Part shown: positions 17,901-56,299 of the stretch, piece by piece
Layout of the letters: every line of letters starts with the position of its first letter
How positions within the stretch are numbered: position 1 is the first letter of the stretch
Source: Camelus dromedarius
Lineage: Eukaryota
Reading direction: 5' to 3'
DNA length: 64,000 nt
Assembly: GCF_036321535.1 (NCBI RefSeq)
Contig: NC_087469.1
Coordinates: forward strand, 7,998,001 to 8,062,000
Notes under the pieces: generated by a model
Told to the model about the DNA's origin: nothing
The model's input: the letters and a program-made list of their open reading frames with translations, nothing else
The model's database searches: none
Program-made: the position numbers and the translations under genes

Positions 17901-20221
17901 AATCTCAGACAGTCTTAATGGTCTCTCCTCCCCTAAATCTAGGGCACCTAGAGTCCCTCAGTACTCACCAGGGTGAAAGGAGAGGCAACCTGCTTTAGCT
18001 CTTTCAGTTTGACAATGAACTCATCAATACTTTCAGCCATGGCTTCTTCGTTTGCCTGACATGAACAGAGAGTAATAGCATCGACCCTGGTAACAGACCT
18101 TGTGTCCCCACTCCGTCATGCCCACATCACTTCCAACAGGAAGTCACCGTCCATCTTAGTTTGAGTGGAAACAGAGACTCAGGCTTCACACTAAGAAGTA
18201 GCAAGTGAGCTAGAAGTTTACGGGGGGGTGCCAGACGAGCCTTATTTTCTCACTCATTCAACCACTTAGCCCAGGCCTTCATGCCAGGTTACAGACAACA
18301 GTATATAAATCAGAGTCCTCTTATGGGGCTCCACAGCCAGTTAAGAAGACAGATGACTAAATGTGCAATTATATTATTTCATACATATGTGTGAAATATC
18401 CTAATATATATAAGATACAATGGAACACTCAGGAAGTACAGATAAACCCAAGGGTATTAGGAAAGGCTCTTCAGAGGTAATATTACAGTATCTGTCTGAG
18501 AAGAGGCCTCAGAATACACTGGGGGAAGGGCAATGGAAAGGACAGCGGTACAACACAAGCAACATCCAGGCAGCCACAGCACCACAGCATGCTTCCCCCC
18601 AAGTTCTCCAACATTCAATCAGAGACAGTTCAGCTACACAGGAAGCTCAACAAGTATATACAACTATATACTATAATTATTCCCTGAGCTGCTGCAATCA
18701 GAAAACCCTAGCTCACCCTTCGTGTGGGCTGATCCTGCTCCAGGCCAGAGATAGCACGGCTGATCAATCCTTCAACAGTGGTCAGAGCTGGTCAACAAGA
18801 ACAAAAGATAGGTAAGTCTGGCTCTCCTATCAAGTGCCTGTAAGAGCCTGGGCATTTCACTTGAACTCTCTGGGCCTTAATGTCATATGTAAAATAGGGA
18901 GGCAGGGAACAAGGTTCCATTCACATCTAATGAGAGTGATGTTAAAGTTCTGTAATAAGCACATCACTGTCTTAGTATGGCTATCTACCATCTCAAGCTG
19001 TTTTTATCTAAGCTTTCCACTTATGTGAAACCAATGAAGATCACAATGATTACATGGCCAAACCCATACACAAGCCACTACACCTGGTACCAGGGATTTT
19101 GCAAGAAAGCAAGATTTCGGCTAGGCATGAACATGAACAGACTAATTATTCTGATCTTAATGTTACCTCCTTTCTGGCTGAAGGCAGGAATTTCAAAATC
19201 CAGCTCTGGGATCCTAGTGGTGGCAAAGTCAGTCTTCACTACTTCTCTGTTCATGTCCTGAGCAAAAAGAAAAACTCTCAGTCCAGAGAGGTCAACAGTA
19301 CAGGTTCTCTGCAGGAAATAGCACACTGTCCCCCTCCATCAGAGCCCCCGGCCCACTGTTTCTTCCTCTCTCCACTCCAGGGAGTCTAGACTACTCATGT
19401 AGGAGAGTACCTTGATGGAACCAGCTGCCCAAATGGTGAGAGTACCACTCATAGCAACCACTGCTCTCTTGATTCCATCTGACAAAGTTTACAAAGCACT
19501 TTCACAAGTCTCATCTCACCTGAGCAGATGACAGCACCGATGCCATTTTTCAAAGGCGGAAACTGAGGCTTGGACACATAAGGAAATTTGCTCAAGGTCG
19601 GACGGCCTGAACCAGAGCTCTGACTCCAGTCCCCGGGCTTTCTCTAAGACACTAGGGTAACTGCTGTGGTTTCCTCTTACCTCCNNNNNNNNNNNNNNNN
19701 NNNNNNNNNNNNNNNNNNNNNNNNNNNNNNNNNNNNNNNNNNNNNNNNNNNNNNNNNNNNNNNNNNNNNNNNNNNNNNNNNNNNNNNNNNNNNNNNNNNN
19801 NNNNNNNNNNNNNNNNNNNGTGAGGAGGAGGCGCGTCATGCCCTGGGAAAGCAGAAAACAGCTAAGGAAAGAGCCAGTGAAACCCCTATCCCCCTGTCTA
19901 CCGGCCCCCGGGCCTACCTCGCCTTCGGGTCCCCAGCTGGGCCCACCTGACCGGATCGCCGACTCTCCCCGCCACAACCCACCCCTAGACCCCAATCCCT
20001 CAACCCCGTCTCAGCCCAACCCTCCAGGTGTCCATGGCCGCGCCCCGCCTCACGTTGCGGTAACAGTTCATGCACAGCGACTCAATCTCGGTGGGCTGCT
20101 GCTCCTCGTCCTCGGCGCTGAAAGGTCGGAACAAGTGCCCCGGCCCCGGAGCCCGGGCCGCTGCGGGCGAGGGGGCGGCAACCCCCGGGGGCCCGGGCTC
20201 CACAGCCCCGCTGGCCGACAT
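11982..20221 (-). CDS. ZPR1: ZPR1 zinc finger protein (ZNF259), 14 exons, 458 aa
   Basis: Exons 20054-20221, 19681-19842 (internal N gap), 19167-19257, 18717-18787, 17969-18055, 17692-17814, 17283-17330, 17033-17099, 16558-16628, 15820-15909, 15250-15360, 14513-14599, 12817-12882, 11982-12116 (TAG). Sum is 1377 nt. Zinc-finger motifs CMNC and CPEC...CENC are visible. Confidence 0.97.
13590..14400 (+). mobile_element. HAL1 / old L1 ORF1-like fragment in ZPR1 intron 12
   Basis: A-rich, with motif ccagattcaaagg...gacccacaccaaagcacatc...aaatttca typical of HAL1/L1 ORF1. Confidence 0.5.
19685..19819. other. Assembly gap (135 N) inside ZPR1 exon 2
   Basis: N run flanked by exon-2 coding sequence on both sides. 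Confidence 0.98.
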
Positions 20222-29430: not shown

Positions 29431-29955
29431 TGAATCAGCGTTCTCTAGAGAAATAGAACCAACAGGATATATACAGATATATAAAAAGAGGTTTCTTATG
29501 AGGGATTGGCTCACATGATTATGAAGGCTGAGAAGTCCCATGATCTGCCACTTGCAAACTGAGGGACCCAGGAAACCCATCCAAGCGCAAAGGCCTGAGA
29601 ACCAGGGAAGCCAGCGGTGTGAGTCTCAGCACAAACTCAAAAGCCCATCAACTGGGGTGTGTCCCAGATGGCGTAAGTCCCAGAGTCCAAAGACCCCAGA
29701 ACCAGGAGCTTCACAGNNNNNNNNNNNNNNNNNNNNNNNNNNNNNNNNNNNNNNNNNNNNNNNNNNNNNNNNNNNNNNNNNNNNNNNNNNNNNNNNNNNN
29801 NNNNNNNNNNNNNNNNNNNNNNNNNNNNNNNNNNNNNNNNNNNNNNNNNCACTCCACCAATTAACATGCTAATCTCTCCAGAGACACCCTCACAGACACA
29901 GCCAGAAAAGATGTTTACCAGCTATCCTGTATTCCTTAGCCAGTCAAGTTGACAC
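29431..29955. mobile_element. ERVL LTR (MLT2-like), interrupted by a 134-N gap (29717-29850)
   Basis: gttctctagagaaatagaaccaacagga...gattggctcacatgattatgaaggctgagaagtccca...agccagtcaagttgaca motifs. Confidence 0.75.
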
Positions 29956-42450: not shown

Positions 42451-44697
42451 TCAGCCCTCCGAAGGGGCTGCTGGCTCCTGTGCGGGGAGGGCGGGGGGCT
42501 GGTCCTGCTTCTCTTTCTCCTTGAGGGTGCTGAAGAAGGAGTTGACCTTGTCCCTCAGATCCTTCTCCAGGAAGCTCAAGTGGCCTTCCACGTCCCCTGC
42601 TAAGGGGCCCAGCTTCTGCTTGAGCTCTTCCACCTGCTGCACCAAAACCCTGTTGAGGACCTCGCCGTAGGGCGCCACCTTGAGCCGGAACTCCTCCACC
42701 TGCCGCTCCAGCGACTTCTGCAGCCCCTCCGCGCTGTCCTGCAGATTCCCCTGCACGTTCTCGGCCACGGGCGCCAGCTTCTGCCGCAGCTGCTCGGCGT
42801 TGGCGGAGATCTTGGCCTTCAGCTCCTCGGCCTGCTTCTTCATCTGGAAGGCCAGGCCCTCCAGCTGGTGGTTGAGCTTCTCCTGGGCATCCTGCGCGTA
42901 AGGGGCCAAGCTGCTGCGCAGCTGCTCCACGTTCTCCTCGATCTTGGCCTTGAGTTCCTCCGCGTAGGGCATGAGGCGCCCCTTGACCTCCTCCACGTTC
43001 TCCTCGATCTTGGCCCTGAACTCGTCCGCGTAGGGCGCCAGCGAGGCCTGCAGCTGGCCCACGTTCTGCCGCAGCGCGGACTCCATGCGCTGCGCGTAGG
43101 GCGTCAGCTGGCGCTGCAGTTGCTGGGCCTGGGCGTTGACCTGGGTGCGCAGCTCCTCCGCGTAGGTCCCCAGGCGCTGCTGCAGCTCGCTCACGTTGTC
43201 CCCGATCTTCTGGCTCACCTCCGTGGCGTGGGGCAGCAGCCGGGCCCGCAGCTCCTCCAGCTCTTTCCGAATCTGCTCTTTCAGCTTCTCCGAGTCCTTG
43301 GTCAGGCGTTCATGCAGCTCCGTGGCAAAGGGCAGCAGCTTCTTCTGCAGGTCTTCCGTGTAGGCGTTCACCTCCCCAAGTTTGTCCTGGAAGAGGGTGC
43401 TGCGGGGGAAGGACACAAGGGGGTCACCTTGGCATTGGTTAAGCTTGGCGTTCCATGTGGGGACCCTTTCTCCTTATATACCACTCACTTGGTGCGCACC
43501 TGCCGCGGACAGGTGAGGGTGCAGGACACTGAGTTCTCCCATCTTTTCCCTGTGGCCTTCCCCAAGGTGGCTCATGATGTGAGCAAATGGATGTAGTAGA
43601 CTAAGGTATTACATTGAACTTGTATCTCTGAATCGCCCCCTGAGCTTGTCACAGTGTCTACCTAGCATGTGACCTTGGGCAGTTTGTTTTCCTCTCCTTA
43701 ACTGTAAAGTAAAAAGGCTAGACTTCGAGGTCCTTCTCAGCTCAGGTGTGCTGTGACAGAGATCACATTCTCTAGTAGAATGTGACGTTCCGAACCTCTT
43801 CCAGCGTCTTCTAGCTACAGCAGGTGCTGGCTTCCCTACACTCGTTCACCCTCAGAGGCTTTCCAGATACCCTCAACTCCCTTTCCATGATTTCACAGAC
43901 TCCTGTCCTTCTGGAATGTATTAGAATCACGTAACATTGCTTTCCCTCCCTTTCTTCTGTGAGCCTCAATGCTAAGATGTGGCCATTTGTCATACTCTAG
44001 AAAGTTCAAGCAGGATCTGGAGACCTCGGGGTCACTCAGTGAGTTGGTGGCAGGGCAGTGGGTATCCTAAGCTCAGGTCTCCTGCCTCCAAGTTCAGCCT
44101 TTGCCAACACATTGCATGGCCTTTAAGAAGCCCCATTCCATGAGCCCTGCCCCTCTTACTTGAGTTTCTGGGTGAGCTCAGACTTCTGAAGATGTTCCAC
44201 AGCTTTTTTGGCATTGTTGCTCAGCTGGCTGAAGTAGTCCCACATCACCGTGGCCACCTGGTCGGCATTGACCTCAGCCTGGGCACCTGGGTGGGATACA
44301 GAGCAATTCTTGAGGACTCACCTCCTCCTTTGCCTCTCAGCACCAGCCCTGAGCTGCAGACTGGATGCTGGGGTAGCACAGCCACTGACTTCCCTCTCCG
44401 CGATTGGCTAGTTAAAAGCCACAGGAGTGTGTGAAGCTGGTATAGCGCCCATGCCAAGGGGCCCACTGCCGTTTATGGACCTCACCTATGAGCTGGGTGG
44501 CAGCCAGACAACCCCCTGCACCCAGCTGTGAGCTGACAGGCACTCAGAAATGTCCTCTCACCTTGTCCCCAGACTTTCCACCCTTCCCTGCTTGATGCAG
44601 CAGATGCGTCCCGCCATAAAGCTCCATCTAAAGGCAGCTCCTACTCACCGGTGACAGCCACCAGGGCCAGGCTCAGGACCACAGCCTTCAGGAACAT
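42451..44697 (-). CDS. APOA4: Apolipoprotein A-IV, 374 aa
   Basis: Exons 44649-44697 ([17 protein letters not shown]), 44160-44286 (127 bp), 42451-43399 (949 bp); total 1125 nt. PolyA signal at 42309-42314, TATA-like TTTAAATA at 44835-44842. Confidence 0.97.
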
Positions 44698-49924: not shown

Positions 49925-50046
49925 TGACCACTGCCCTTTGCCCAGCTCACTGGGCCCTCAGTGCCCACTGCCCTGGGGACAGTATAAAACAGGTCAGAAC
50001 CCTCTTGTTTACCAATTCAGTTCATTCCAAGAAGCAGCTGCTCCAG
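49925..50046 (+). promoter_or_regulatory. APOC3 proximal promoter (C3P element 49925-49944, TATAAAA 49983-49989) and non-coding exon 1 (about 50013-50046)
   Basis: caggtgacc...tttgcccagc, tataaaacaggtcagaaccc and gcagctgctccag|gtaatg closely match the recalled human promoter. Confidence 0.85.
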
Positions 50047-50628
50047 GTAATGCCCCCTGGGAGGAGGAGGGGGAGGGAAAGGAGCGCGGGGTGGAGGGCA
50101 GCCGGCAAAGCCTGGAGAAGAGCAGCACCCACTCCCGCAAGGCGCTCCCGGGAAACTGAGGCCCATGGGGGACGGTCCCTTGCCCAAAGCTCCACAGAGA
50201 GCAGTAGCAGAGCTGGGACTGGAAGTGGCTCCAGATCTGCACATTTGCCCCTACTTCTGCATGTTTAGGACTGGAAGAAGCCTTCGATACCCTAGTCCTA
50301 GCCCAGAGAGAAAAACGGAGGCCTAGAGGGGGCAGAAAGCCACCCATAGTCACCCAGCCTGTTAGTGGCAGAAGCCCAGTCAGAACCCAGGTGCCTTGAT
50401 CCCTTGTCTGCTGGGTTTTCCGCTCCATGCCCCCCCTCCCTCTCTTGGGCCTGCGTCCCTGGAGGCTCCTGTCCAGAAAGCCCTTAGTCTCCCCGCTCCT
50501 ATATTAGCACAGGAGCAGGCCCTTTCTTCTCCTGGCTTGACTCAGCTCAGGCCCAGGGAGGGCCCAGCGGTGGTGGTGGGGCTTGGGGAACCTCTCACAG
50601 GACACTTCCCTGCAGGAACAAAGGCGCC

Positions 50629-51214
50629 ATGCAGCCCCGGCTCCTCTTCGTGGCTGTCTTCCTGGTGCTCCTGGCCTCTGCCCGTAAGCAGCTGGTGGGG
50701 ACTGGGCTGCGGCAGGGAGGGGGCAGCCTCCTGGAGGTGGCCTGAGGGTGCCAGGTCTCGATGGGCTGCCGGGCAACAGCCAAGGGTTCCCCAGAGGCTG
50801 ATCCACCCCACTCAGCCCCACTCTCCTCACAGGAGTTACAGAGGCCGAGGATCCCTCCTTTGCGGAAACAGTGCAGGGCTATGTGAAGCAGGCTAGGTAT
50901 GTCATCACTTCCCCACCCTGGGCTCCCACCTGCCCCAGAATCTCAGTGAGAGCCCAGGCAGGGGGCTGTGGGTCTCCTACGCCCACCCGGGACCAGCACC
51001 TCTCTGAGCCTCCATTCTGTCTATAAAGCAGACTCCCTCATAGGGAGAGATGCTGGAGGGGGCACTGCATCCCGCCTCTTCTCCCTTGGTTGTCCCTCCT
51101 TTCTCAGTGCCCTGTGTGGCTCTGACGAAGGCCATTCAGCCCTCTCTTGTACTTTCCTTTCCGATAGTCTGGCTGGAGGTTTGGCTTGGAAGGCTCTACC
51201 TGACCCAATTTCAG

Positions 51215-51258
<44 letters not shown>

Positions 51259-52007
51259 CTGCCTTGTTGCAAGCCCCAGGGCCCATGTGAACTGAAGTTG
51301 TTCCTTCCTCTCCCACCCTGCCCCTGCCCACTAGCTCTCTCCTCTCCCCAGCTCCCTTCCCCACCTCCACCCCACTGGTATTTACAGCATTCACAAGCAT
51401 TCCTAGTCTTCACAACCCGCTGTGGAGTATTATTTTCCCCACTTTGCAGATAAGAAAATCAAGTCTCACCTAACCAAGAGACCTGCCCCAGATCACACAG
51501 CTAATCAATCCTCTGACAATTTTCCAAATGAGAGACTGCCTCCCTCTGCCCCACCCCACTCCGAGCCACCGGGATGTACCTACCACTCTAGGGGGCGTCA
51601 TTTTCCTAGACCAGAGTGACAGTCCTGACTTCACACATTGCCCACCCCACTCAATCACTCCTCTCCAGCTTGCCTCACACCTGTGGTGGCACAAAGGTCT
51701 GCCCCAGCCTGGAGAAACATGGGTTGAACGAGTGCTGGGGGTCCCATTACCACCTTGGGCTGTCTTCCTGGGGAGGTAGCTATAAGGGGTAGGGACACCC
51801 CCCTCACGGCATTGCTGGGTGGGGTGGAGGGGGCATGGAGAGGCCGTGGGGATATGTGGGGGGCCCATGGTTTCCACTGCCTAGAGATCAGCCCTCACCC
51901 CCATCCCTTTTGCTCCCTTCACTGATTTGACTCCCAGGGACTGGGTGAATGAACGCATCAGCTCCCTGAAAGACTACTGGAGCACATTCAAGGAAAAGTT
52001 CTCTTAA
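50629..52007 (+). CDS. APOC3: Apolipoprotein C-III, internally deleted and C-terminally truncated (62-aa precursor); possibly a pseudogene
   Basis: Exons 50629-50683 ([18 protein letters not shown]), 50833-50896 (64 bp, donor GTATGT), 51938-52007 ([22 protein letters not shown]). Ancestral-position TGA in frame at 52059-52061; AATAAA at 52223-52228. Confidence 0.9.
51217..51256. repeat. (GT)20 microsatellite, APOC3 intron 3
   Basis: Direct reading. Confidence 0.95.
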
Positions 52008-54699
52008 TTCTGGGAGCCTATCCCCAAGGCCACACCACCTCTGGCCTCTGAAGTCGCCTGAGAACTCCGTCTCCCAAGTCCGCCTTCCTATCCATCCTGC
52101 GAGCTCCTTGGGTCCTGCAGCCTCCAGGGCTGCCCCCAAAGTTCCCTTGAAAGAGACAACATTCTCAGTGCCCTCCCATCCCACCCCAGACCTGGCCCAC
52201 CCTCAGGGTGAGCTGTCCTTCCAATAAAGCTGGACGAGAAGCTGCCGTAAGTGGGATGTCCCACGCGTGCCATGTATGTTTGGGTACGGAAACCGGTCAG
52301 GGTTCTTCTGTGGGTGAGCTCTGGACTGACTCCAACTCAGGCAGCAGCTGGGTGGTTTCTGGGCCCAAGTTTCTTCATCTGTGAGGTAGGAATGACCCTG
52401 TCTACCTTGCCTGCCTCGGCAGGTTTGCGTAGAGAAGCAAATGGGATAATAGGTTTGACAATATGTTGATAAACTGTCAAGTGCTGGGCAACATGACTTG
52501 AATGTGTGCTCTCTGCCAGACATTGTTATGTCATCATCAAAACTGATACTGTGTGTGTGTTCACCAAAATTCTGGAGCTGACTTGCATACGGGGGCTGCT
52601 GGCCCTCTCAGCACACTTCAGGGAAGGAGGCCTGTCGGGTGGTGATTGAAATAGGATACAACTAGGCTCTGGTCTTGGCTCAATCACTTCATATCAGCCT
52701 CAGTTTCTTATCTGTAAAGTAGGCACAATGATACCCATTGTAGGTTTGTTGAGAATGAATGAAGGACATCAGACTGTGCACAGCACCTGGCCCATCAAAG
52801 CACCTGTGAATGGCTGCCCTTGTCGCTCTAGGCTGAGCCGATTGTCCCCTTGGGACCAGGATCAGACTAGGGGGCCAGTGTCCTGGGAACTAAGAAGGAA
52901 CCCAAGGTCACCCAACACTGGCTGTGTCCCTTGTGTCCCCACCACCCAACAGATATTCGTATCAGATAGTTCCAGAACCACAGACTACTTGAGCAGCCGT
53001 ACTCTTCCTGCGATGAGACTGAGGCTCAGAAAGGTGAAGGCAATTGCCCCATGTCACTGAGTCACCAAATGGCAGACCTGGACCTCAAGCCCAGGCCAGC
53101 TGCCCATATTCTGCTCAGCGGACGCAGAAGAAAGCTGAGTTACTCCCATGCCTGGGGTCAGAGGGCTCCTTGACAGGTGTTGGTGACATCGGGATATGCA
53201 GCCCCACTGGGAGACGTCTGCTCTCCCTCCAAAAATCTACCTGGGCTTCTCTTCGGGCCCACGTGTGTCAGAGAGCCCAGCACCCACACCGGGAAAATGT
53301 TCTCACCCAAATCTGGGCTTGACGCCTATTATAGCTCTGGTTGGTTAGGAACCAAAAGCTCACCCCTCTATCCAAGAGCTGTTAAGAAATACTGGAGGTG
53401 GAGGAGGGGCAGATTATCCAGCACCAGGGGCAAAAGGCCCTGAGGGGAGACGGAAGGGAAAGCTCCATGAATGCACCGCCCAGAGCGCTGCAGATCCATG
53501 AAGCGACACGCATGCGTATGGCAGTACACCTACCTGAGTGTGAAGAGGGGCCAGCTGTGAACACGCAAGCCCAGATGAACTTGAGTGCTTGGACACACAC
53601 TTAAAAAAAAATAATAATAATAATAATCATGGATGTCCAGGAGCAGATGGGTTTAAAAAAGGCAACTCAGCCCATCCTGCTCTCCAACTTCGGATGTGAC
53701 TCCGCATCTCCGAGCTCCAGCGTCCTCATCCACACCATGGATTTAACGGCAGTCTACCCAGGATTTGGGGAAGGATGCAATGAGATGTTGGATATGAAAG
53801 CACCTTGGAAATAAAAATGTGTTAATTACCTGCAAGAGGGGGTGATTATTCTTCTGACTCAGGTCAGAGCTGGCAGACAGTGGGGCTGGCAAGGCGAGAG
53901 CCCAGCGTAGGGGACGGCTGGCCGGCCGGGCTGGGCCAGAGGAAACAGCGGCTGTTTCCTGGCAGGGTGGGAGTGTGCAGAGTGAAACGAGACCCTTGTG
54001 GAAACAGAAAAGGAAAGTGTTTGTTAAAGCGTTTTTTGAGTTAATAAAGGAGGAAGGAGCAAACGCCAAGCCCTTCAGTTGAATCCGTCGGAGGTCTTCA
54101 AGTCGCAGTGGCTCCTTAAGATCCATCCGCCTCAGCGGCCCTAGAGACGGAGGGCGGGGGGGTCTCCTGTCCCCTGCGCACTGGAAACACCTGGGGACAG
54201 GGAACCCACTTCTCCCAGCAAAGCCAGCGCTACTGGCTACAGAACTTCTTGTTTGAAAGGCTCTTTCAGGGAACCCGCTTTGGATTATCTCTTGCTTTGC
54301 CTGATTTTCTATTATTTCCCTTTCCGTTTGGTCCTCCTTAGCAAAGAGCCTACTACCTCACTCCCAAACCCCGGGCCTAGCAGGTCCTCCAACATTAAGG
54401 CCCCTAGAGACCTGGGTTCGGAGCTGATGACTCGGTGGAATCAACAGAGAAGTCCCTGATCCCTGGTCGCGCCCCCCTCCCACCCCCGACCCCGGACGTC
54501 CCCTCCAGCGCCCCTTAACCCGGCCCCCATTCTCCCCAAAGAGAATTTTTCTGAGTTTTGGAGAATTTTTATTGTTTAAAAATCATCATCCCTGAAGCCT
54601 CCCCAAACATACAACCCATCACATGGTGTCCTGCTCTGTAAACGTTTATTCTAAGAAACCGCACGACGGCGAGGGAATCCGGAGCGAGTGAAGGGCGGC

Positions 54700-56299
54700 T
54701 CACTGGGGGTTCAGCTTCTTGGAGGCCTCTTCGATGGCGGCCAGGATGCTGGTCTTGAGGCTCTCCAGCACGGGCAGCAGGCCCTGGCGGAGGTCCTCCA
54801 GTGCGGGCCTGGCCTTCTCGCCCAGCTCTTTCAGCTGCTCGGCGGCCTTGGCGTGGTAGTCGGCCAGGCTGGCGCCGCCGCCCTCCTTGAGCGCCTCGAA
54901 GCGGGCGGCCAAGCGCTGGCGCAGATCGTCGCTGTAGGGCGCCAGCTGCAGGCGCAGCGCCTCCACGTGGGCGCGCGCGCGGTCGCGGACCTCCTCGGCC
55001 AGCGGGCTCAGCTTCTCCTGCAGCTCCTGCATCTTCTGGCGCGCGTCCTCGCGCAGCTCCGCGCCCAGCGGCGCCACCTTCTGGCGATAGATCTCCATCT
55101 CCTCCTGCCACTTCTTCTGGAAGTCTTCCAGGTAGGGCTGCACCTTCTGCTTCACCTCCTCCAGATCCTTGTTCATCTCCTGCCTCAGCGTCTCCGTCTC
55201 CTTTTCCACCCTGTCCCAGAACTCCTGGGTCACCGGGCCCAGCTGCTCCTGCAGCTTGCTGAAGGTGCTGCTCAGGCTGTCCCAGTTGTCCAGGAGTTTC
55301 AGGCTGAAGGGGGAGAGAGAGAGGAGGGCTCAAGGGAGGGCTCTCAGGGACGCTGGGCACCTCCCCCACCCCGAGCTGCAGCCCAGCGCTCCCCATTTAC
55401 CTGGGGGTGAGACCTGGGCACACCTGCCCCTGAACATAGGGTAACTGGGGGCAGACCCTCAGCTTAGCTTCTCCCATTTGTGGTCTCCCCCAGGGTCCCC
55501 CCACTGCACCACCACCACAGCATCCCATTGACCAGGTGGGATGAGGATCTAGAAAGAGACAGAGCTGAGTCTGGTGCCCAGTCTTGTCTGTCTCTGAAGC
55601 TGGAGCTTTTAAGGGTCTGATCTCCACCCTTCCAGCCCATTCTCCTCTCTGAACACAGCCATCCCTGCTGCTGGCAGGAGCAGAGGAGGGGTTAAGAATG
55701 GGACGGGGCTTGTGAACAATGACTGGGCAGCGCTGGTCTGCCCCTTGGTTGTGATTCTGCATGGGGATCCCACTCTCATTTTCCATCCAAGCCTTCTACG
55801 GGGCCCATCAAATAGCAAGTGGGAATTCAGCCAGTCTGGTTGCTTCTTCCCACAGGCCTCTCCACCCTCCAGAACCAGCACCAGCACCCCCTACCCCTGC
55901 ACCCAGTCCCAGGCTGGGTTCTTACTTGAGTTGTTTTCCCAAAGCAGAGGCTTCAAACTGGGCCACATAGTCCCTGCCGCTGTCTTTGACTGCATCCAGG
56001 TACACGGTGACAAAATCCTTCACCCGATCCCAGGATGACTGGGGGTCATCATGCTGCCAGAAATACCGAGCCTGGCTCCCTGGGGGTGAGAGGGGAGACC
56101 CAGATCAGGCCAGCTCTGGGCCAGGATCTGAGCTGAAATGCTCAGGGGAGACGGGGTGATGGAGAAATTCTACTCCCAGTGCCCAGGAAGGTAGACCACA
56201 GGGATTCAGGGAGAAGGTGTTGCTGATGGTTGGCTCCCTAGGCTGGGGGCACCTACCGGTGAGGAAGAGCACAGCCAAGGTCAACACCACGGCTTTCAT
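54700..56299 (-). CDS. APOA1: Apolipoprotein A-I, 266 aa
   Basis: Exons 56257-56299 ([14 protein letters not shown]), 55926-56079 (154 bp), 54700-55303 (604 bp); total 801 nt. Non-coding exon 1 at about 56529-56549; polyA signal at 54645-54650. Confidence 0.97.

Follow-up and report, generated by a model that had tools for sequence, protein, structure and literature searches.

The APOC3 locus and its premature stop codon

The window analysed here (the whole 64-kb stretch of Camelus dromedarius DNA) contains APOA4, APOC3, and APOA1 in the order usual for this cluster. An APOA4 exon lies on the reverse strand at 42451-43416, the APOC3 gene on the forward strand at about 50010-52245, and an APOA1 exon, again on the reverse strand, at 54700-55233, with APOC3 and APOA1 standing tail to tail. 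The order APOA4-APOC3-APOA1 is also found in the Camelus ferus locus. The identification of the gene as APOC3, made in an earlier note on this DNA, is borne out by this synteny and by comparisons of the predicted product. The latter scores 50.2 bits against the Pfam family PF05778 (Apo-CIII; curated cut-off 34.1) in a match of two stretches, the best of which aligns residues 37-62 with positions 36-61 of the 69-position profile, and it is matched by the human apoC-III chain 2jq3 with an E-value of 1e-10.

The four-exon structure of APOC3, with its conserved splice sites and phases, is present in the window. A TATAAAA box read in the sequence (49983-49989, forward strand, like all APOC3 features given below) precedes a noncoding exon 1, which ends at 50046 and is followed by the donor GTAATG. 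Exon 2 (50615-50683) carries the ATG at 50629 and 55 nt of coding sequence for the signal peptide, a length also found in pig, hippopotamus, humpback whale, goat, horse, and muntjac. Exon 3 (50833-50896) has 64 nt instead of 124 nt, an in-frame loss of 20 codons. In exon 4, the coding part that would still be translated (51938-52004) runs from Arg/Asp-Trp to Lys-Phe-Ser and is closed by a premature TAA (52005-52007). Joined at the canonical GT/AG sites, exons 2, 3, and 4 read as one open frame of 62 codons, with this TAA as its stop. The 3' untranslated region extends from 52062 to about 52245 (the end is approximate) and includes an AATAAA signal at 52223-52228, in a block conserved across all species aligned. 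A 133-residue antisense open reading frame is expected on contigs of the spliced APOC3 transcript.

The premature stop lies 67 nt into exon 4, which is the last exon, as the earlier note had placed it; the exon reads AAG TTC TCT TAA TTC TGG ... GTC GCC TGA, and 17 further sense codons (52008-52058) separate the TAA from the TGA at 52059-52061. Residues 36-62 of 2jq3 align to residues 36-62 of the camel product, which puts the stop at the codon of human mature Glu63, in agreement with the position first proposed. The alignment with 2jq3 contains a second gap: the N-terminal part of the product corresponds to human residues 1-18, and about 20 residues are missing between the two parts. Directly behind the stop, the former C-terminal tail, now predicted to be untranslated, begins with the Phe64-Trp65 pair (TTC TGG) and continues as a Pro-rich segment with a single Thr at 52032-52034. 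The pair and the Thr/Pro-rich tail thus stand behind the stop, as had been claimed; the description of this tail as the equivalent of Thr74 was loose in its wording, in that its one Thr is two residues off human Thr74.

Origin and spread of the stop codon

Exons 3 and 4 were aligned with those of the APOC3 loci of pig, hippopotamus, humpback whale, goat, horse, and muntjac. The codon orthologous to the camel TAA is GAA in humpback whale, GAT in hippopotamus, GAC in pig and goat, and AGC in horse, and the TAA would most simply have arisen by one G-to-T change from GAA, or in two steps from GAY. Exon 3 is 124 nt long in each of the five outgroups whose gene is intact (pig, hippopotamus, humpback whale, goat, and horse) as against 64 nt in the camel, and the 60 nt that the camel lacks lie between two copies of AGCAGGCCA, both of which the outgroups possess. 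The downstream TGA aligns with the stop codons of humpback whale, pig, goat, and horse and was rightly taken to be the ancestral stop. It is the alignment with other ungulates, and not the openness of the frame, that identifies the tail as the old one.

The lesion is common to independent individuals and to a related species. In particular, a genomic Logan contig (SRR36380801) shows 4 differences from the window over 1428 nt, all of them downstream of APOC3, and its exon 4 is identical, including the TAA. An APOA1 query led to a C. ferus protein with 99% identity, and scaffold KB016494.1 of this species carries an APOC3 locus in which the TAA, the 17-codon tail, and an exon 3 of 64 nt all recur. 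The coding sequences of the window and C. ferus differ by one synonymous substitution, in exon 3 (50882), and by no non-synonymous one; a further difference (A/G) is found in the 3' untranslated region at 52178, and the 2462 aligned bases contain 18 substitutions altogether (0.73%). A distance of this size marks the window as a Camelus other than C. ferus, most likely the dromedary. In the run index, the fraction of sampled words present, for the gene as well as for exon 4, is 0.99-1.00 in at least ten DNA samples of the window species, which stem from at least five studies. Judged from these sequences, the TAA is a real germline nonsense codon of the APOC3 orthologue, common to at least two Camelus species. 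The stop is apparently present in every camel sampled and appears fixed in the genus, contigs being blind to a minor sense allele.

The open frame behind the stop had also been read as a sign that the stop is fairly recent, which does not hold, as openness is uninformative on age and the same TAA is found in C. ferus. Of random 17-codon frames in the window, 50-62% are free of stops, and a new stop in the tail would result from only 5 of its 153 possible substitutions. A drift model, in which substitutions were assumed to occur at 1e-9 per site per year and indels ten times less often, puts the probability of an intact tail at 0.97, 0.90, and 0.82 after 5, 20, and 40 million years, respectively. 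Since C. ferus shares the TAA, the stop should be older than the split of the camel species, a minimum age that is valid barring introgression; introgression has been reported among camels (PMC12337305).

Transcript and predicted product

By the exon-junction-dependent rule of nonsense-mediated decay (NMD), a stop in the last exon spares the mRNA, and the APOC3 mRNA should escape NMD because of the place of its stop. In the run index, 0.89-0.92 of 26 sampled exon 4 words are found in small runs (19-129 million letters, with four other organism labels) and in RNA-Seq runs labelled liver or mammal metagenome. In the small runs these words appear to come from abundant transcripts, since a single-copy genomic locus could not be covered at such depth. 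This signal, obtained from an index of words, fits a transcript that escapes NMD. The two or three absent exon 4 words would fit one base difference, and C. ferus has exactly one in this exon, at 52178. With respect to loss of expression as the mark of a pseudogene, the word index points the other way, given the exon 4 signal in small RNA-type runs and in liver RNA-Seq.

The earlier note weighed the stop alone; together with the 60-nt loss in exon 3, the predicted product falls well short of a mature protein of 62 residues. It would be a 62-residue precursor and, after processing, a remnant of at most 42-44 residues as compared with the usual 79-residue protein. Cleavage of the signal peptide would leave 44 residues if it follows Ala-Ser-Ala, or 42 residues if it follows Ala-Arg-Val. 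Retained in the predicted product are the acidic N-terminus, Gln-Gly-Tyr, and the helix from Asp-Trp onwards; missing are some 20 residues of the centre, Phe64-Trp65, and the Pro-rich tail together with its one Thr. The peptide has part of the C-terminal lipid-binding half and two of the three Trp residues; the complete half, with the Phe-Trp pair and the tail, is absent from the conceptual translation. ApoC-III is O-glycosylated at Thr-74 (review PMC12909363), and a passage of the same review, citing Meyers et al. 2017, deals with the role of its C-terminal aromatic residues.

We propose that the premature TAA and the in-frame loss in exon 3 together give a 62-residue precursor from an mRNA that is spared from NMD and still made. 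Removal of the signal peptide would then yield a peptide of 42-44 residues that is devoid of the protein middle, of Phe64-Trp65, and of the glycosylated tail. Such a remnant would probably be a poor binder of lipoproteins and have little or no inhibitory effect on lipoprotein lipase and remnant uptake. The most likely reading, in which we have moderate confidence, is that camel apoC-III is strongly weakened or null, that is, a genus-wide hypomorph or null.

Human loss-of-function alleles of APOC3 (R19X, splice-site variants, and A43T) are linked to lower plasma triglyceride and described as cardioprotective (PMC5081052, PMC3905724, and the review PMC12909363). Like the camel lesions, they are truncating or disabling changes in the same gene. 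However, the human alleles are rare or founder alleles and mostly early, whereas the camel stop is late (mature codon 63), lies in the last exon, is accompanied by the in-frame loss of 20 codons, and is apparently fixed in the genus. Mutants of the C-terminal aromatic residues of human apoC-III are reportedly the subject of work by Meyers and co-workers from 2017. The Phe64/Trp65 region removed in these mutants is the one lost behind the camel stop, but the mutants are laboratory point mutants of the full-length protein, whereas the camel change is a truncation.

Alternative readings and significance

The main rival of a loss of function, which we regard as possible but rather unlikely, is that a secreted peptide of 42-44 residues is kept by selection and works as a regulator at the lipoprotein surface, perhaps a weaker or differently tuned one, the stop having trimmed a dispensable tail. 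Both lesions preserve the frame of the remainder; in both camel species the gene still has an undamaged start codon, signal peptide, poly(A) signal, and set of splice sites; no change specific to the camel is seen in the core of the C-terminal helix; and the transcripts appear abundant by the word index. The intact frame and signals, the in-frame nature of the exon 3 loss, and the unchanged helix core all count against a loss and would fit a peptide under selection. The length of the ungulate tail also varies naturally: hippopotamus apoC-III ends 3 codons before the common TGA, the pig tail lacks 12 nt, and the black rhinoceros protein has 89 residues. All these variants, unlike the camel, keep the Phe-Trp pair and the 124-nt exon 3. 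On the other hand, one in-frame deletion has a 1-in-3 chance in the absence of selection, and the split of the camel species is too recent to expect further lesions in 186 nt, so the intactness of the camel gene has little weight.

Substitution patterns bear on the same question. In the part of the mature protein that is retained, the camel branch shows 9 non-synonymous and 2 synonymous singletons, six of which are clustered at residues 26-31; they give no sign of constraint, although the counts are without power. The camel tail has 4 non-synonymous changes and 1 synonymous change, like other lineages, and the frame downstream of the stop is not conserved beyond the neutral expectation. In the horse, where APOC3 is intact, the counts to be set against the 9 and 2 of the camel are 13 and 3, and such branch counts are without power to separate the two readings. 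APOC3 evolves fast everywhere.

A different light is shed by the muntjac Muntiacus reevesi, where the gene of an 'apolipoprotein C-III-like' protein (XP_065800243.1) has lost part of exon 3 without a change of frame (76 nt remain) and has its stop at the same codon as the camel gene. Its product by canonical splicing has 66 residues, much like the 62 of the camel. The muntjac lesions are independent of those in the camel: the borders of the deletion differ, and the stop is a TGA produced by a +1 insertion as opposed to a substitution. The short muntjac copy is a redundant tandem paralogue with an intact 96-residue APOC3 about 8 kb away on the same chromosome, whereas the broken camel gene is the only copy seen. 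Seen in a redundant duplicate, the same two kinds of lesion have the look of decay, which leans the reading of the camel gene towards loss of function. An interpretation of the muntjac gene as a convergent 'miniaturisation' of the orthologue was dropped, as an intact APOC3 adjoins the short copy.

The presence of an intact and a decayed copy on one muntjac chromosome also lends itself to the idea that the broken camel copy is redundant and an intact APOC3 paralogue elsewhere in the genome does the work. For the camel this is very unlikely. Protein-to-DNA searches with five ungulate apoC-III proteins as queries detected one APOC3-like locus only in the 64-kb window, and likewise in 24 kb of C. 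ferus, in both cases a single copy in the usual cluster order. No camelid, and hence no camelid apoC-III of normal length, appears among the 120 apoC-III matches listed, which span more than 100 mammal species.

Even less probable is that readthrough or recoding of the stop codon still gives some full-length tail. The old tail is intact and in frame, but chance alone would be expected to leave it so. Of the stop codons, UAA is the least leaky, and an example of a leaky context is UGA followed by CUAG. The camel stop is UAA followed by U, which does not have such a leaky context and to our knowledge fits no known readthrough motif; the earlier judgement of TAA-T as a poor readthrough context is in line with this general knowledge. 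Finally, an artefact of assembly or base calling, or a rare allele carried by the animal sequenced (the earlier note had named a base-calling error and a rare allele as grounds for rejecting the stop), is scarcely credible and can be set aside, since the sequence is identical in a contig from an independent run, in the assembly of another species, and, by the word index, in many samples from several studies.

The camel gene has left little trace in the collections searched. A protein search with the 62-residue product gave no homologue candidate, and its exact look-up was blank in both protein collections, as were exact look-ups of several open reading frames; no full-length camelid APOA1 protein was returned, two metagenome scans gave no hit, and a short isoform of the wild yak (P0124) was not traced to DNA. 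In the literature, we found no paper on APOC3 in camels or camelids or on loss of the gene. Truncating alleles of human APOC3 are well known, and a genus-wide one in another mammal appears to be unreported.

APOC3 acts as a brake on the clearance of blood fat and is among the best validated human targets for triglyceride lowering, against which current drugs are directed; people with broken copies of the gene are protected from heart disease. If loss of function in camels is true, the camel would be a lifelong large-animal model of APOC3 inhibition, and if the whole genus lives with a stump, a lifelong near-absence of apoC-III would be compatible with normal mammalian life. Such a state would also be a natural experiment on the parts of apoC-III required to bind lipoproteins and to inhibit the lipase. 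Should the stump be active, it would define the minimal functional apoC-III. The state of APOC3 could further bear on the handling and storage of fat in camels. We tentatively suggest, as a possibility that we consider more doubtful than otherwise, that camels are a natural genus-wide APOC3 knock-down or knock-out and that the loss was favoured, as an animal with a fat store in its hump would be well served by clearing triglyceride-rich lipoproteins into adipose tissue more quickly.

Deletion within exon 3

Exon 3 of the camel APOC3 gene (positions 50833-50896 of the window) is short by 60 nt, and the same deletion of 60 nt is found in the second Camelus species compared, C. ferus. Paired copies of AGCAGGCCA flank the corresponding stretch in hippo, pig, humpback, and goat, a pattern that fits slippage or a microhomology-mediated deletion.

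Short and variable C-termini in other ungulates

A tandem duplication of the APOC3-APOA1 segment is seen in Muntiacus reevesi (OZ005633.1; segments L001:6001-7359 and L009:8001-9731), where APOA4 is followed by intact APOC3, then by an APOA1-like gene of 187 residues and a short APOC3-like gene, with APOA1 last. The short APOC3-like copy has an exon 3 of 76 nt and carries a +1 insertion that leads to a TGA stop, which occupies the identical codon position to the camel TAA (52005-52007). The same end point is observed in predicted apoC-III isoforms of 81-82 residues in two bovids, sheep X3 (P0190) and wild yak X1/X2 (P0192 and P0124), all of which terminate in Lys-Phe-Lys and have a full exon 3.

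The length of the apoC-III tail also differs between other ungulates. The hippo gene (locus L004) has a TAA three codons upstream of the shared TGA (52059-52061 in camel), 12 nt of the tail are missing from the pig gene (locus L005), and the protein of the black rhinoceros (P0072) is 89 residues long, whereas that of the white rhinoceros has 100.

Other features of the window and odd run labels

APOC3 intron 3 contains a (GT)n microsatellite (51208-51250) at which the window and C. ferus show a difference of 8 nt. The site of the camel stop is crossed on the minus strand by an antisense ORF of 98 codons (51888-52184), known from a gene-caller record on a Logan contig. A Pfam search with this ORF gave no match, and it looks spurious; it served only to retrieve an independent contig. 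Two runs of N, of 135 and 133 bases, are located at 19685-19819 and 29717-29849, respectively. Finally, 0.09-0.12 of the camel APOC3 gene words are present in two RNA sequencing runs labelled as marine sediment metagenome (X19 and X20), which may be an oddity of labelling or contamination.
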